From: Macrostomum lignano
Taxonomy: Eukaryota
Assembly (NCBI GenBank): GCA_002269645.1
Contig: NIVC01000692.1
Location: 180,187-244,186, forward strand
Length of the DNA: 64,000 nucleotides
Direction of reading: 5' to 3'
This document shows, in pieces, positions 30,401 through 33,328 of the stretch. Both the position numbers and the translations under genes were made by a program. Below the pieces are notes generated by a model that was given only the letters and a program-made list of their open reading frames with translations, was not told the origin of the DNA and did not search any database. Position 1 is the stretch's first letter. Every line of letters begins with the position of its first letter.

Positions 30401-33328
30401 GTCTATGGTAAAAAGTCTACTCAAAGCACCAAATGTTTTAAAAGAGTCGCCACAAAGCAGGTAAAAGCTTGCAAATTTAGCCAAAAAAGTCAGCCAAGCA
30501 CTTATTAAAACAACAAAACAGCATTGGCAAGAAGCGGCGGCATCGAGCAGAAATGTACAGCGGCGGCTGCAACGCTGACTGGCAGCAGGACAGCGCCAAC
30601 TGGAAGGATTGCATCCATCGGTGGAAGCGGAGTCGAGAAAAATGGCGTCAAGAGGCAGTGAAACTGCAGCGCCAACTGTGCGAGATGACGCGCAGCGCCT
30701 ATCACTGGCGCCAGCAGGCCAACATGGCCCAAAGCCAGTTAGCGAAAACTCGCGAAGCGCTAATCTGTTGGCGCCAAGAAGCGTTACGCTGTCAGGAATC
30801 GGCGCGACAATGGCGCAACGAAACGCTTCGCTGGCGCGAACAGGCGCGCATTTGGAAGCGGCACTGCAACGAGCTGATGGACCAGAAGGACGACCAGCAG
30901 ATTGCGCAGCTGTGCCGGGCCAGACAGACTCACTGCGCCGAGATGCGCCACATGTACAGGGGTTGCTTTTGAAGCAAAAGTGGGCCATCATCGCCTTTTT
31001 TCAAATCCTGTGCCTGGCCAGAGACACAGGGTGCTATATATATATATAAACAGATGGGCCACTGGGCACATTGGCTTGAATGCTACTCGTACTTTCAGTT
31101 CAGAAGAAAGAAGTTTAATAGAGGCCAATTTATTGCATTATTTGGGACAAGACCTGTTCAGTGGGCATTCAAACCACCCCTCCTACTTTAACCCTCCCCC
31201 CGAGCGAAAATCTCTACCCCGCCCGGGCCATGCACATTTCATGGCGCTGGCTAATGTACATCCAAACTGCAACTCCAATTGCATTGCTTTTCATAAAATA
31301 GCTTACGCATTTTTCCCTGCTACTGAACTGGAAGTAAGAGAAACTGTTCTAACATTTAGGCCCATCTAGTAATTGTAGTCTAAAAGCATTCGTTCGATTT
31401 CGAATTGCTGCCAAAAAGAGGCTACTAAACTAGAAGTGGCATAATACATTTTGGCGCCAATTTTAAATCGAAAACTTTTAAATTAAATAAGCTCAGAATG
31501 TTTAACAAAGGAAAACGCTATATATATAGCATATATTATATATTACTAAGAATTAAAGTCCAGAAATGTTCGGATTTTTCAGAAAAAAGTATTGTGTTGC
31601 ATTGCTTCTTGGCTAGGAGATCTTGCCCAATTTCTCTGTGGCCCATTTTTTGTTTTTACAATATTTTCAAGAGTCGTAATGCGCCTTCGCTAAGCTTAAG
31701 CGAATGATGTTTCAAATAAAAGTGAGTAGTAGGTAAGCATTTGTTCGCTATAAATAAATAAAATCTATAAACGCATTAAGCGCATGAGTTGCAGAGCTGC
31801 TGCTGCCCTAGCTAGTTACACTAAATGTATTATACCTGCCTCAGTCTACGTCATTAGATAAAGCAATAAGAGACTCACCTCCTTCATGTTCAGGCAGTGC
31901 AGGTGAAAGGCCTGCGGGCAGGAGTCGCACAGGATCAGGTCGCCGTCGTCGCGGCACTCGGAGCAGAACTCCTGGTGGTGATCCTTCGGCTCCGGCTCGG
32001 CCGCCGGCTCCTGCCCTACCTGAACACCCTCTTTCTCGCAGTGCGGGCAGCTCCACCGGCCGCTGGGCGCCTCCTCTAGCTCCGGGTCCAGGCACACCAG
32101 ATGGAAAGCCCGCGGACAGGTGTCGCAAAGGATTATCTCACCGCCTGCCTGGCACACGTCGCAATAATCCTGGTAGAGGGAGTTGGGTAATACTGACTGA
32201 CTGACTGACTGACTGACTGACTGACTGACTGACTGACTGCCTGACTGACTGATTGACTGACTGACTGACTGACTGACTGACTGACTGCCTGACCTGATGG
32301 TCAGTCTCGTAGCCATCCTCGCCGGGGAATCTCTCCGTTGTTCTGACGTGGTCAGCAGAACCAGTCGCACGTTTGGCGGCGGCTCCGCCGGCGCTTTTAC
32401 GCGATTTTCTTTGCTCCTTTTCCTCTTCTTGGGCTCGCTCCGCCTCCTCTAATTGCCGCTCGAATTCCTCGTCAGAAGTGTTATTGCCTCCGCCTCCTCG
32501 TCTGCGTTTCTTCTTAGTAGATGAGGAAGGCGTCGCGGAAGCAGCAGCCGCGGTGGAAGCTGCCGCCGCCTGCCCTGAAGACGTCGAGCCCGCAGACTTT
32601 TTCTGCCTGCTAATTTTTATTTTCAACCCGCTTCCGCCGCCAGCTGAGGTAGCCGCAGTCGCCGCCTCCGCCGCTGCCGTCTCTGTGCTAGGAGAATCCA
32701 GGCCCCCGCTGATGTCGGCTGTCGGGGCAGGAGCAGCCGCGCTGGATCGACGCCCGCCGCCGCCGCCGCCTCCGCCCCGGCCTTTGCGCTTCCTGCCTCG
32801 CTTGCTCTCGGCAGGGGCGACCGGAGCTGCGGGCTCGGCCGCCGCCTCGCCTTCGTCGTCAACAATCTCCTCGTCTGTGTAGTCGGTCAGATCATCCTTA
32901 GGAATATAGGGATTCAGCGAAGCGAATTCTTTCCATTTGGCGTCCAGCACAGTGCGAATGTTTTCTTTGCTAGCTTCCGGATTTCTCTCTTCTAGAAGCG
33001 GCTGCACGTACTGATTAAATAGCTTTTGAATTGTCCAGTTTTCAAAATTCTCCGACGTATAAGACAATTCAACGTCTTGAATTTCGAGTTCTTCGCAGAT
33101 TTCTTCAACAGATTTTGTACGCCGACTGCGCTGCCGGGCTGTCGACCGGCGAGACGAAGTTCGAGCAGCGCTGCTAGCGGCTTCATAGTCGCTAAATTCG
33201 ATTTCTTGTTTAGCTCTTTTTGAACGCTTGGACCGACTTTCTCGACCTTCTCCGCGACTTCTTCGCTTCCGACGAGTGGTTTCGTCTTGCACTGACATCT
33301 CGCTTTCGTTCAAATCGTCGGCATCCAT
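15442..33328 (-). CDS. CHD4: Chromodomain-helicase-DNA-binding protein Mi-2 (CHD3/4/5 family), about 1862 aa
   Basis: Ten GT-AG exons in consistent phase: 33328-32294, 32169-31879, 29319-28750, 27785-27076, 24625-23800, 23207-22887, 21719-21183, 17586-17065, 16300-15805, 15722-15442 (5589 nt). Domains: CHDNT, two PHD fingers, double chromodomain, SNF2 ATPase ([21 protein letters not shown]), and C-terminal [14 protein letters not shown] and EDLLSDMK motifs. It is an invertebrate Mi-2 orthologue, so the symbol is approximate. Confidence 0.95.
16400..17062. repeat. 22-bp minisatellite in CHD intron 8
   Basis: Unit TCAGCCTTCCAGAGATCTACT(T/C), about 30 copies. Confidence 0.9.
18031..18270. repeat. 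80-bp tandem triplication, part of a dispersed repeat also present at 34454-34590
   Basis: AAGGAGAGAGGTCAAAGTCAGACGGACGAA recurs at 18041, 18121 and 18201. Segment 18234-18389 aligns with 34454-34590. Confidence 0.85.
18534..21074 (-). mobile_element. TIR DNA transposon (PIF/Harbinger-ISL2EU-like), internally deleted, carrying a USP-like protease domain
   Basis: Left end GGGGATGTCAACTTAAGCACCAGAA (18534) is the reverse complement of the right end ...TGGTGCTTAAGTTGACATCCCC (21074). Arms are built from a ~160-bp unit (about 1.3 copies left, 2.7 copies right). The right flank is TTAA and the left is AAAA, so no clean TSD. Lies in CHD intron 7. Confidence 0.85.
18834..20647 (-). pseudogene. Decayed transposase C-terminus - SWIM-like motif - ubiquitin-specific protease (C19) fusion
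   Basis: Manual translation across 3 frameshifts and 4 stops. [14 protein letters not shown] (20647-20606, TxxRxVVE motif); [27 protein letters not shown] (about 19895-19815); USP Cys box [11 protein letters not shown] (Cys 19568-19570); [17 protein letters not shown]; TRTCGICH; His box [28 protein letters not shown] (His 18942-18944). Confidence 0.7.
21890..22790. repeat. 35-bp minisatellite in CHD intron 6
   Basis: Unit GATAGTGAGAGAAGGGCTGATACGGAGGTGAGATT, about 25 copies. Confidence 0.95.
23440..23700. repeat. Alternating 22/25-bp minisatellite in CHD intron 5
   Basis: GAGGGCGATTCTCAGTGGTTTT and GAGGGCGATTCTCACTGGTTCTTTA units. Confidence 0.9.
25995..26930. repeat. 23-bp minisatellite in CHD intron 4
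   Basis: Unit GAGATGCGAGAAGGGATGGGTGT, about 40 copies. Confidence 0.95.
27865..28455. mobile_element. Putative non-autonomous element with imperfect subterminal inverted repeats in CHD intron 3
   Basis: CACAGC..CCGCGCCCGATGAAA (27876 on) is imperfectly inverted relative to TTTCAACGGGGCGG..GCTGTG (to 28428). Both outer ends recur at 7425-7479. The interior is rich in GAGTC/GACTC motifs. Confidence 0.5.
29470..30325. repeat. 27-bp minisatellite in CHD intron 2
   Basis: Unit GGGAGATTGGATCCGGTAGGGAGTGCT, about 31 copies. Confidence 0.95.
30553..30972 (+). CDS. Nested antisense ORF (139 aa), Trp-heptad coiled-coil protein of unknown family
   Basis: ATG-to-TGA ORF with GC/CpG-rich exon-like composition between AT-rich flanks. 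Trp at residues 10, 17, 24, 31, 52, 73, 87, 94, 101, all in the same heptad position. Not needed for the CHD model, since exons 2 and 3 join as MKE|APEGDW. Confidence 0.6.
   Translation: MYSGGCNADWQQDSANWKDCIHRWKRSREKWRQEAVKLQRQLCEMTRSAYHWRQQANMAQSQLAKTREALICWRQEALRCQESARQWRNETLRWREQARIWKRHCNELMDQKDDQQIAQLCRARQTHCAEMRHMYRGCF
32193..32292. repeat. (GACT)n microsatellite filling CHD intron 1
   Basis: About 25 tetranucleotide units in a 124-nt intron. Confidence 0.95.

Follow-up and report, generated by a model that had tools for sequence, protein, structure and literature searches.

The proximal section of T7 gp17, the tail fibre protein, is a triple-helical parallel coiled coil (PMC13485008), and in the cholinesterases four WAT helices form a superhelix that winds about an antiparallel polyproline-II (PPII) helix, the PRAD (10.1101/431288). 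The Trp-zipper, a variant of Escherichia coli Lpp-56 (PDB 1T8Z), is cited as the product of engineering, a barrel of five helices in which Trp is buried (10.1101/2021.02.01.429152). These are the closest described structures to a protein of the flatworm Macrostomum lignano that is presented here. Its gene lies in a 64,000-nt stretch of contig NIVC01000692.1 (assembly GCA_002269645.1, positions 180,187 to 244,186 of the forward strand), which we call the window and to which all coordinates refer unless another sequence is named. The gene is intronless and nested antisense in the second intron of a Mi-2/CHD gene, and its 139-amino acid (aa) product, hereafter the Trp-heptad protein, carries nine Trp residues in a single heptad phase. 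The evidence described below shows a real gene that is under constraint and confined to its lineage, and whose product has the grammar of a helix with strictly phased heptads; we read it as functional, transcribed and protein-coding.

The proximal coiled-coil rod of T7 gp17 (PDB 7BOZ, 7EY7, 7EY9; residues ~150-266) shares with the M. lignano protein the in-phase grammar aromatic-[R/K]-x-[E/Q]-[A/S]-x-x, as seen in its heptads FRNEAET, FRNQAEG, FKNESST, WRDETKG, and FRDEAKR. The aromatic residue is mostly Phe in gp17, whereas it is Trp in the M. lignano family; gp17 belongs to the virion and combines several domains in its 553 aa, and the animal protein is free-standing. A sequence profile search of 177,635 PDB sequences returned non-significant matches only, the best being these gp17 heptads (E = 0.067, 16.2 bits), a score at which homology is not established.

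The WAT segment of cholinesterases is likewise a natural amphiphilic helix in which Trp stands at each seventh residue and is followed by K or R. No Pfam family was found at threshold for the Trp-heptad proteins; AChE_tetra (PF08674, WAT) was the sole recurring specific hit, in five of the eight family members and always below its 25-bit gathering threshold. The best of these matches (P0007, residues 92-114, 19.1 bits, E = 0.0011) lies over the last three Trp, and the window protein scored 12.7 bits (E = 0.11). WAT is the C-terminal part of a secreted enzyme, has only three Trp within ~35 residues and needs the proline-rich PRAD as a ligand, whereas the M. lignano protein has nine Trp over 92 residues, stands alone, and lacks a signal peptide, a cholinesterase catalytic domain and any other domain.

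The Trp-zipper likewise has Trp in core positions of a parallel coiled coil, but it is man-made, whereas the M. lignano family is natural. Its a and d positions are reportedly both filled by Trp, and this is said to force the wide pentameric barrel. In the M. lignano family Trp occupies one core position and never position 5 of the heptad, so that the pentameric stoichiometry need not apply. An earlier sequence-only reading of the window had pointed out that core Trp can drive higher-order (e.g., pentameric) coiled coils; the Trp-zipper pentamer is a poor model for the family, the other core position being mostly Ala, Leu, or Ser. Mlig-sperm1 and other Macrostomum-specific orphans of M. lignano resemble the family in being lineage-restricted, present in several copies and unannotated. 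Conservation of the Mlig-sperm1 family extends across free-living flatworms, whereas the Trp-heptad family was found in M. lignano only, and no sequence relationship was found between the two.

The nested gene and its tryptophan phase

The coding sequence (CDS) of the Trp-heptad protein occupies 30553..30972 on the plus strand as a single exon of 139 codons and a stop (ATG at 30553, TGA at 30970-30972). This assignment draws on the open reading frame (ORF) itself, the phase of the Trp residues, a called gene, the ratio of nonsynonymous to synonymous change (dN/dS), a helix predicted by AlphaFold2 (AF2), and the GC content at third codon positions (GC3). The nine Trp are residues 10, 17, 24, 31, 52, 73, 87, 94, and 101, every one of which equals 3 modulo 7. 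When the nine residues were permuted at random over the 139 positions, a single-phase placement was obtained in 0 of 2,000,000 permutations, in agreement with the chance of (1/7)^8 calculated in the sequence-only reading. The same reading had noted R, K or Q after each Trp, which holds for all nine, and a mostly small residue four positions on, which holds for seven of the nine (A, S, T, or C), the other two being I21 and R28. It had further described the 21-nt units as diverged in their DNA, and indeed Tandem Repeats Finder (TRF), set as low as its minimum score of 30, detected no 21-nt repeat in the ORF; the heptad periodicity therefore resides in the protein and not in the DNA.

The GC3 of the ORF is 0.74, similar to that of the CHD exons (0.67-0.74), while the surrounding intron has only 37-39% GC. 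The Cys-rich tail of the earlier description is present (Cys105, 121, 128, and 138), but its ending RGCF and most of its Cys are not conserved in the paralogues. There is no hydrophobic stretch at the N-terminus, and the Trp-heptad proteins are for this reason not classically secreted. No canonical AATAAA was found in ~740 nt beyond the stop codon, where variants only occur (e.g., TATAAA at 31045).

At three loci of GCA_002269645.1 the annotation already contains a gene, without a name, that encodes exactly this 139-aa protein. Because the annotation of this assembly was built on RNA-seq transcript assemblies (StringTie, TACO, and the TBONE boundary pipeline; PMC5730564), a called gene implies a transcript model. 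The nested antisense gene postulated from the sequence is thus real, and it was already contained in an RNA-seq-based annotation.

A lineage-restricted family of paralogues

Homologues were sought among 5.8 billion clustered proteins and by an exhaustive hidden Markov model (HMM) scan of 1.84 billion representatives. Both protein searches returned relatives of the Trp-heptad protein in M. lignano only, and no family member was found in the viral contigs and metagenome contigs that were scanned, which bears out the suggestion of a lineage-specific protein. The family consists of the group of the window protein and five further paralogue groups (P0001, P0002, P0003, P0006, and P0007) of 136-156 aa, with 55-67% identity to the window protein. 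All six groups are single-exon, and their loci are unrelated: one lies between IFRD and arrestin genes, one beside dynamin and ANF-receptor genes, one beside an aldehyde dehydrogenase gene, and others elsewhere. The nine Trp are kept in every full-length member, save for a replacement of Trp10 by Val in one, and alignment gaps are confined to the region before W17 and to the C-terminal tail, leaving the 18 heptads free of indels. The Trp-heptad family comprises at least six paralogue groups, all of them old and intronless, and is restricted to the species or the genus. Because 44.5% of M. lignano genes are Macrostomum-specific, with 54% among germline-enriched genes (PMC5816591), an orphan family is ordinary for this genome.

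Two annotated members are shorter: P0004 (118 aa) is a truncated form of paralogue E and P0005 (70 aa) of paralogue F, each falling in the 90% identity cluster of its full-length counterpart. Either pseudogenisation after duplication or incomplete gene models may account for them. Some paralogue loci also share DNA outside the genes. A repeat of ~170 nt occurs with 85-86% identity at 57585-57753 of the window, 12743-12913 of L008, 13434-13603 of L009, and 6668-6837 of L010; near paralogue C it sits 2.3-3.2 kb downstream of the gene, and it is probably a dispersed repeat. Upstream of paralogues C and D there is a common 95-nt element (83% identity), ~500-600 nt before the ATG.

Selection and origin

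Among four paralogue groups, the Nei-Gojobori dN/dS was 0.10-0.17 with pS ~0.7, that is, with synonymous sites saturated. Identity in the same groups was ~50% at third codon positions and ~75% at first and second positions, and nucleotide similarity between paralogues stops at the ends of the CDS. Together with the GC3 of the ORF, these observations indicate long-term purifying selection on the protein, and this evidence of constraint therefore excludes a chance ORF, a minisatellite artefact and a recent mobile element. The sequence-only reading would have been contradicted by a dN/dS near 1 with indels in orthologous loci or by identity to the ORF of a transposable element (TE); the ratios lie far from 1 among the paralogues, indels are absent inside the 18 heptads, and no TE ORF matches.

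The same reading had considered a retro-inserted or de novo gene. With at least six anciently diverged paralogue groups, the copy in the CHD intron was not born de novo there, and this part of the proposal did not hold. As for a TE or retrocopy origin, no shared termini or flanks, no significant Pfam hits (hence no TE domains), and no intron-bearing parent were found among the family. Because all members are intronless, with neither flank similarity nor an intron-bearing parent, retroposition and DNA duplication are indistinguishable.

A shared element upstream of the paralogues

The window copy is preceded, 152 nt before the ATG, by GTCTATGGTAAAAAGT (30401..30416, plus strand), a putative family-specific promoter or regulatory element. 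Its first eight nucleotides, GTCTATGG (30401-30408, at -152), occur exactly once within the 64-kb window. On either strand, this 8-mer (GTCTATGG/CCATAGAC) was found <400 nt upstream of the ATG in all six paralogue groups. In four other groups it stands at -190, -160, -144 (reversed), and -157, so that groups A, B, C, D (reversed), and F fall between -144 and -190. In group E it is present at -345/-365 in copy L013 only, and no exact match to GTCTATGG was found upstream of the other copy, L012. The motif lengthens to GTCTATGGYYAAAAGT in three groups. When the six upstream regions were resampled under a first-order Markov model (n = 1000), an 8-mer common to six groups arose in 0 resamplings and one common to five groups in a single resampling. 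The flanks of the paralogues otherwise show no conservation common to the family, and in view of this and of the recurrence of the motif we infer that GTCTATGG is a putative family-specific cis-regulatory or core-promoter element. Its position at a similar distance in most copies, yet inverted once, fits retained or re-acquired regulatory DNA better than simple mRNA-borne sequence.

Helix and heptad grammar

AF2 with the family alignment predicted one continuous helix over residues 14-134, without a hairpin or break (mean pLDDT 89, and 95-98 over residues 21-120); the pTM of 0.44 is as expected of a lone rod. With the heptad table, this prediction bears out the coiled-coil helix of heptad repeats, with Trp at the core, that the earlier reading had described. 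The table was compiled from the six paralogues, each with 18 heptads in phase (n = 108 at position 1). Position 1, which corresponds to d, is W in 53/108 cases, then L, A, Q, and M, and is 83% hydrophobic. Position 5, which corresponds to a, is most often A (32) or L (18), then S, R, T, and C, never W, and is 63% hydrophobic. Position 2 (e) is R/K in 52% of cases, plus Q, and position 4 (g) is mostly Q, E, and S, with 23% acidic residues; positions 3, 6, and 7 (f, b, and c) are mixed polar, position 6 being the most variable. The family shows several marks of a canonical left-handed heptad coiled coil, namely 18 uninterrupted heptads without a stutter, hydrophobic a and d, a predicted helix, and complementary charges at e and g. 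The combination of a basic e with an acidic or amide g suits parallel g-e' pairing, whereas an antiparallel arrangement would oppose like charges. The pattern is a canonical coiled-coil grammar of the parallel type with an unusual occupant at d.

The proteins are rich in basic residues (R+K = 20-29 per protein), and pI is 9.1-10.4 in five of the six paralogues and 7.15 in the remaining one. The near-invariant block NWKDC[I/V]HRWK[R/C]SR[E/D]KWR-E (codons 16-34; 30598..30654, plus strand) is invariant at 16 of its 19 positions across the family, on all faces of the helix, which suggests contact with something besides sister helices. A basic cluster, KRSR, lies inside it and is compatible with a minimal monopartite nuclear localisation signal (NLS) as that consensus is generally understood. 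The block may be a partner-binding or NLS-like site.

Possible architectures of the Trp-heptad protein

From the properties described above we infer the oligomerisation, orientation, stoichiometry, localisation, and any cellular role of the protein. Apart from ~13 N-terminal and 5 C-terminal residues, each protein would be an amphipathic helix of ~120 residues in 18 heptads, with a hydrophobic seam formed by Trp (else Leu, Met, or Ala) at d and, four residues on, by Ala more often than Leu, and Leu more often than Ser, Thr, or Cys, at a. Such helices would self-associate, or associate with those of paralogues, as a parallel coiled coil whose core alternates between bulky layers of Trp and small layers of Ala, while g-e' pairs of Glu/Gln with Arg/Lys run along the seam. 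The N-terminal block probably touches another molecule, which might be a protein, a nucleic acid, or an import receptor. A parallel coiled-coil oligomer is the reading we favour, and we regard it as probable though well short of certain. A trimer would be its most likely state, by analogy to the aromatic-R/K-x-E/Q-A heptad of the T7 tail fibre, and we hold this with less confidence than the parallel oligomer itself.

Several points weigh against this reading. The resemblance to T7 is not statistically significant and is an analogy at best. AF2 was run on a single chain, and a long helix is returned for any strongly helical sequence, here with a pTM of only 0.44. Constraint was estimated only among paralogues of M. 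lignano. No evidence of expression level, tissue, or protein was found for any family member: the gene IDs did not occur in the papers searched or in supplementary files of four M. lignano papers, but at least one of these tables was truncated, so that their absence is not evidence. Aromatic residues make up <10% of natural a/d residues, and Trp is poorly or not fully tolerated in some coiled-coil cores (10.1101/2021.02.01.429152), which is also why a conserved natural stripe of nine Trp is unusual.

Pairing of a with d' is typical of antiparallel coiled coils, and the alternation of bulky Trp with small Ala or Ser core residues would suit it. The helices could then form an antiparallel homodimer or a bundle of four, every Trp being fitted against a small residue of the opposing helix in a big-small, Alacoil-like manner, and a designed aromatic-rich peptide did give an antiparallel tetramer (10.1101/2021.02.01.429152). 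In such an arrangement, however, e would face e' and g would face g', juxtaposing like charges with e = Arg/Lys and g = Glu/Gln, and the AF2 helix shows no hairpin or break; we consider it unlikely, if the least so of the alternatives. Slightly further down we would place a WAT-like assembly, in which the Trp-stripe helices wrap as a superhelix round the PPII helix of a Pro-rich partner, Trp not being packed on Trp. WAT helices do assemble in this way round an antiparallel PPII helix (10.1101/431288), as with the PRAD of ColQ/PRiMA; AChE_tetra was the top or sole recurring specific Pfam hit in the five matching members, and in the matched stretch, RQWK.E...RW......WK.Q and then a Cys, three Trp recur at heptad spacing as they do in WAT. 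Every one of those scores is nevertheless under the gathering score, neither a cholinesterase nor a WAT chain was returned by the PDB profile search at E ≤ 10, the protein lacks a cholinesterase domain, and no Pro-rich partner is known. The charges at g and e match a self-associating parallel coiled coil instead, and the family is small at four residues after Trp, unlike WAT, which we take to have aromatic or large residues there. Its chances are accordingly slim in our judgement.

The basic character of the proteins would also allow each to act as a single Trp/Arg amphipathic helix on a membrane or on nucleic acid, e.g., as a chromatin or sperm-nuclear basic protein, with the Trp stripe as its contact face. 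The high pI of five of the six paralogues, their Arg and Lys content with Arg or Lys beside each Trp, and the NLS-like KRSR cluster are in favour of this, as is the share of Macrostomum-specific genes, overall and among germline-enriched ones (PMC5816591). Yet only one side of the seam is basic, the other carrying acidic or amide residues (E/Q/S at position 4), one paralogue is close to neutral, and the hydrophobic stripe is just two positions wide, so that we find this the least probable of the functional alternatives. Far below all of these stands a non-functional ORF, be it a chance frame, a fragment of a TE or viral ORF, or a degenerate minisatellite that looks coding. The minisatellites of 27 and 23 nt in the CHD gene do yield long spurious ORFs, and over half of the M. 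lignano genome is repetitive (PMC5730564). Against this stand the low dN/dS among paralogues at unrelated loci, the lack of a tandem DNA repeat in the ORF, the differing flanks, the sharp GC3 island formed by the ORF, and the conserved upstream motif, along with the lack of significant Pfam hits, and so of any to TE or viral families, and of relatives in the viral or metagenome contigs scanned; this explanation is effectively refuted already.

The host CHD locus and its copies

The host gene is transcribed from the minus strand. Its exon 1 (ATG at 33418) encodes CHDNT, exon 2 (32169-31879) two PHD fingers, and exon 3 (from 29319) a chromodomain, followed further downstream by SNF2, Helicase_C, DUF1087, and CHD-II (subfamily II) SANT-like domains, all according to Pfam. 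Intron 2, counted by coding exons, spans 29320..31878 on the minus strand, with GT at 31878-31877 and AG at 29321-29320; the reading of the second PHD finger is continuous over the junction, and the flanking exons carry the Pfam domains named above. This intron encloses the nested gene and a 27-nt minisatellite, and the description of an intronless 139-aa ORF antisense to CHD within intron 2 is accordingly accurate. Intron 1 (32293-32170, minus strand) has only 124 nt, nearly all of which is a (CAGT)n microsatellite of ~25 copies.

At each of the three loci at which the 139-aa protein is called, the nested gene lies antisense in intron 2 of a CHD gene encoding 1866-1868 aa. The copies are L005 (NIVC01000692.1 200739-221158, equal to 20553-40972 of the window), L006 (284134-304553, reversed), and L004 (NIVC01000769.1); L005 and L006 lie on the same contig in inverted relative orientation, ~83 kb apart. 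Because the gene is nested in all three copies of CHD, the nesting predates those duplications. The threefold locus fits the large-scale duplication and aneuploidy known in the DV1 line (PMC5730564). The ORF shows 0 differences among the three copies, and the unique flanking DNA only ~0-2 substitution columns per 210-nt bin, for which reason the identity of the ORF is uninformative on selection; a test of selection among these copies was rejected, the flanks being nearly identical too.

The nested gene is closely preceded by the 27-nt minisatellite (29498-30324, 30.7 copies, 91% match), whose copy number varies between the three locus copies. It yields long spurious ORFs in several frames, one of which (510 aa, minus strand, with Pro-rich repeats) overlaps the real gene. 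A functional link between this minisatellite and the gene was considered and rejected, as the tandem repeats near other paralogues, where there are any, are unrelated to it; varied tandem repeats near the paralogues are expected, because tandem repeats make up 15% of the M. lignano genome (PMC5730564). A further minisatellite, of 23 nt (26005-26921, 40 copies, 93% match), is located between two SNF2-domain exon ORFs of CHD and gives three overlapping spurious ORFs of 304-414 aa without a Pfam hit.

Elsewhere in the window, a tRNA-His gene (anticodon GTG; 33588-33659, minus strand) lies on the strand of CHD, ~170 nt upstream of its start codon at 33418, and was detected by Rfam (61.9 bits) as well as by ARAGORN. 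An ORF with a mitochondrial carrier repeat (4351-5634, plus strand) and another with SH3-domain hits in four matched stretches (11882-13099, plus strand) presumably belong to neighbouring genes.

Significance of the Trp-heptad family

As a hypothetical protein without a name, the gene model is already in the public record. We found no prior description of the Trp core, with its strict phase kept by selection, or of the putative promoter motif that the paralogues share. In the boldest interpretation, which we regard as a long shot, the family would be a natural Trp-stripe module with an architecture new in animals. It might be a WAT-like sheath of ~18 nm on a Pro-rich partner, or a Trp-layered parallel coiled coil whose stacked indoles would lend unusual mechanical or optical properties to a Macrostomum-specific intracellular structure, and the six paralogues might act as defined hetero-oligomers co-regulated via GTCTATGG.

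There is so far no evidence of an unusual biological role, and the attraction of the family lies in coiled-coil structural biology. Trp is usually avoided by designers of coiled coils (10.1101/2021.02.01.429152), and nine in-phase core Trp kept through saturating synonymous divergence are a natural test case of how Trp layers are accommodated; the Trp-stripe family could also offer a new building block for protein design. The locus also illustrates cleanly how a functional gene can sit antisense within an intron of a chromatin remodeller that is itself essential, an arrangement kept in all three duplicated copies. For flatworm biology, it provides a tractable, constrained orphan family with a candidate shared regulatory motif, in an animal for which RNA interference (RNAi) and transgenesis are available.

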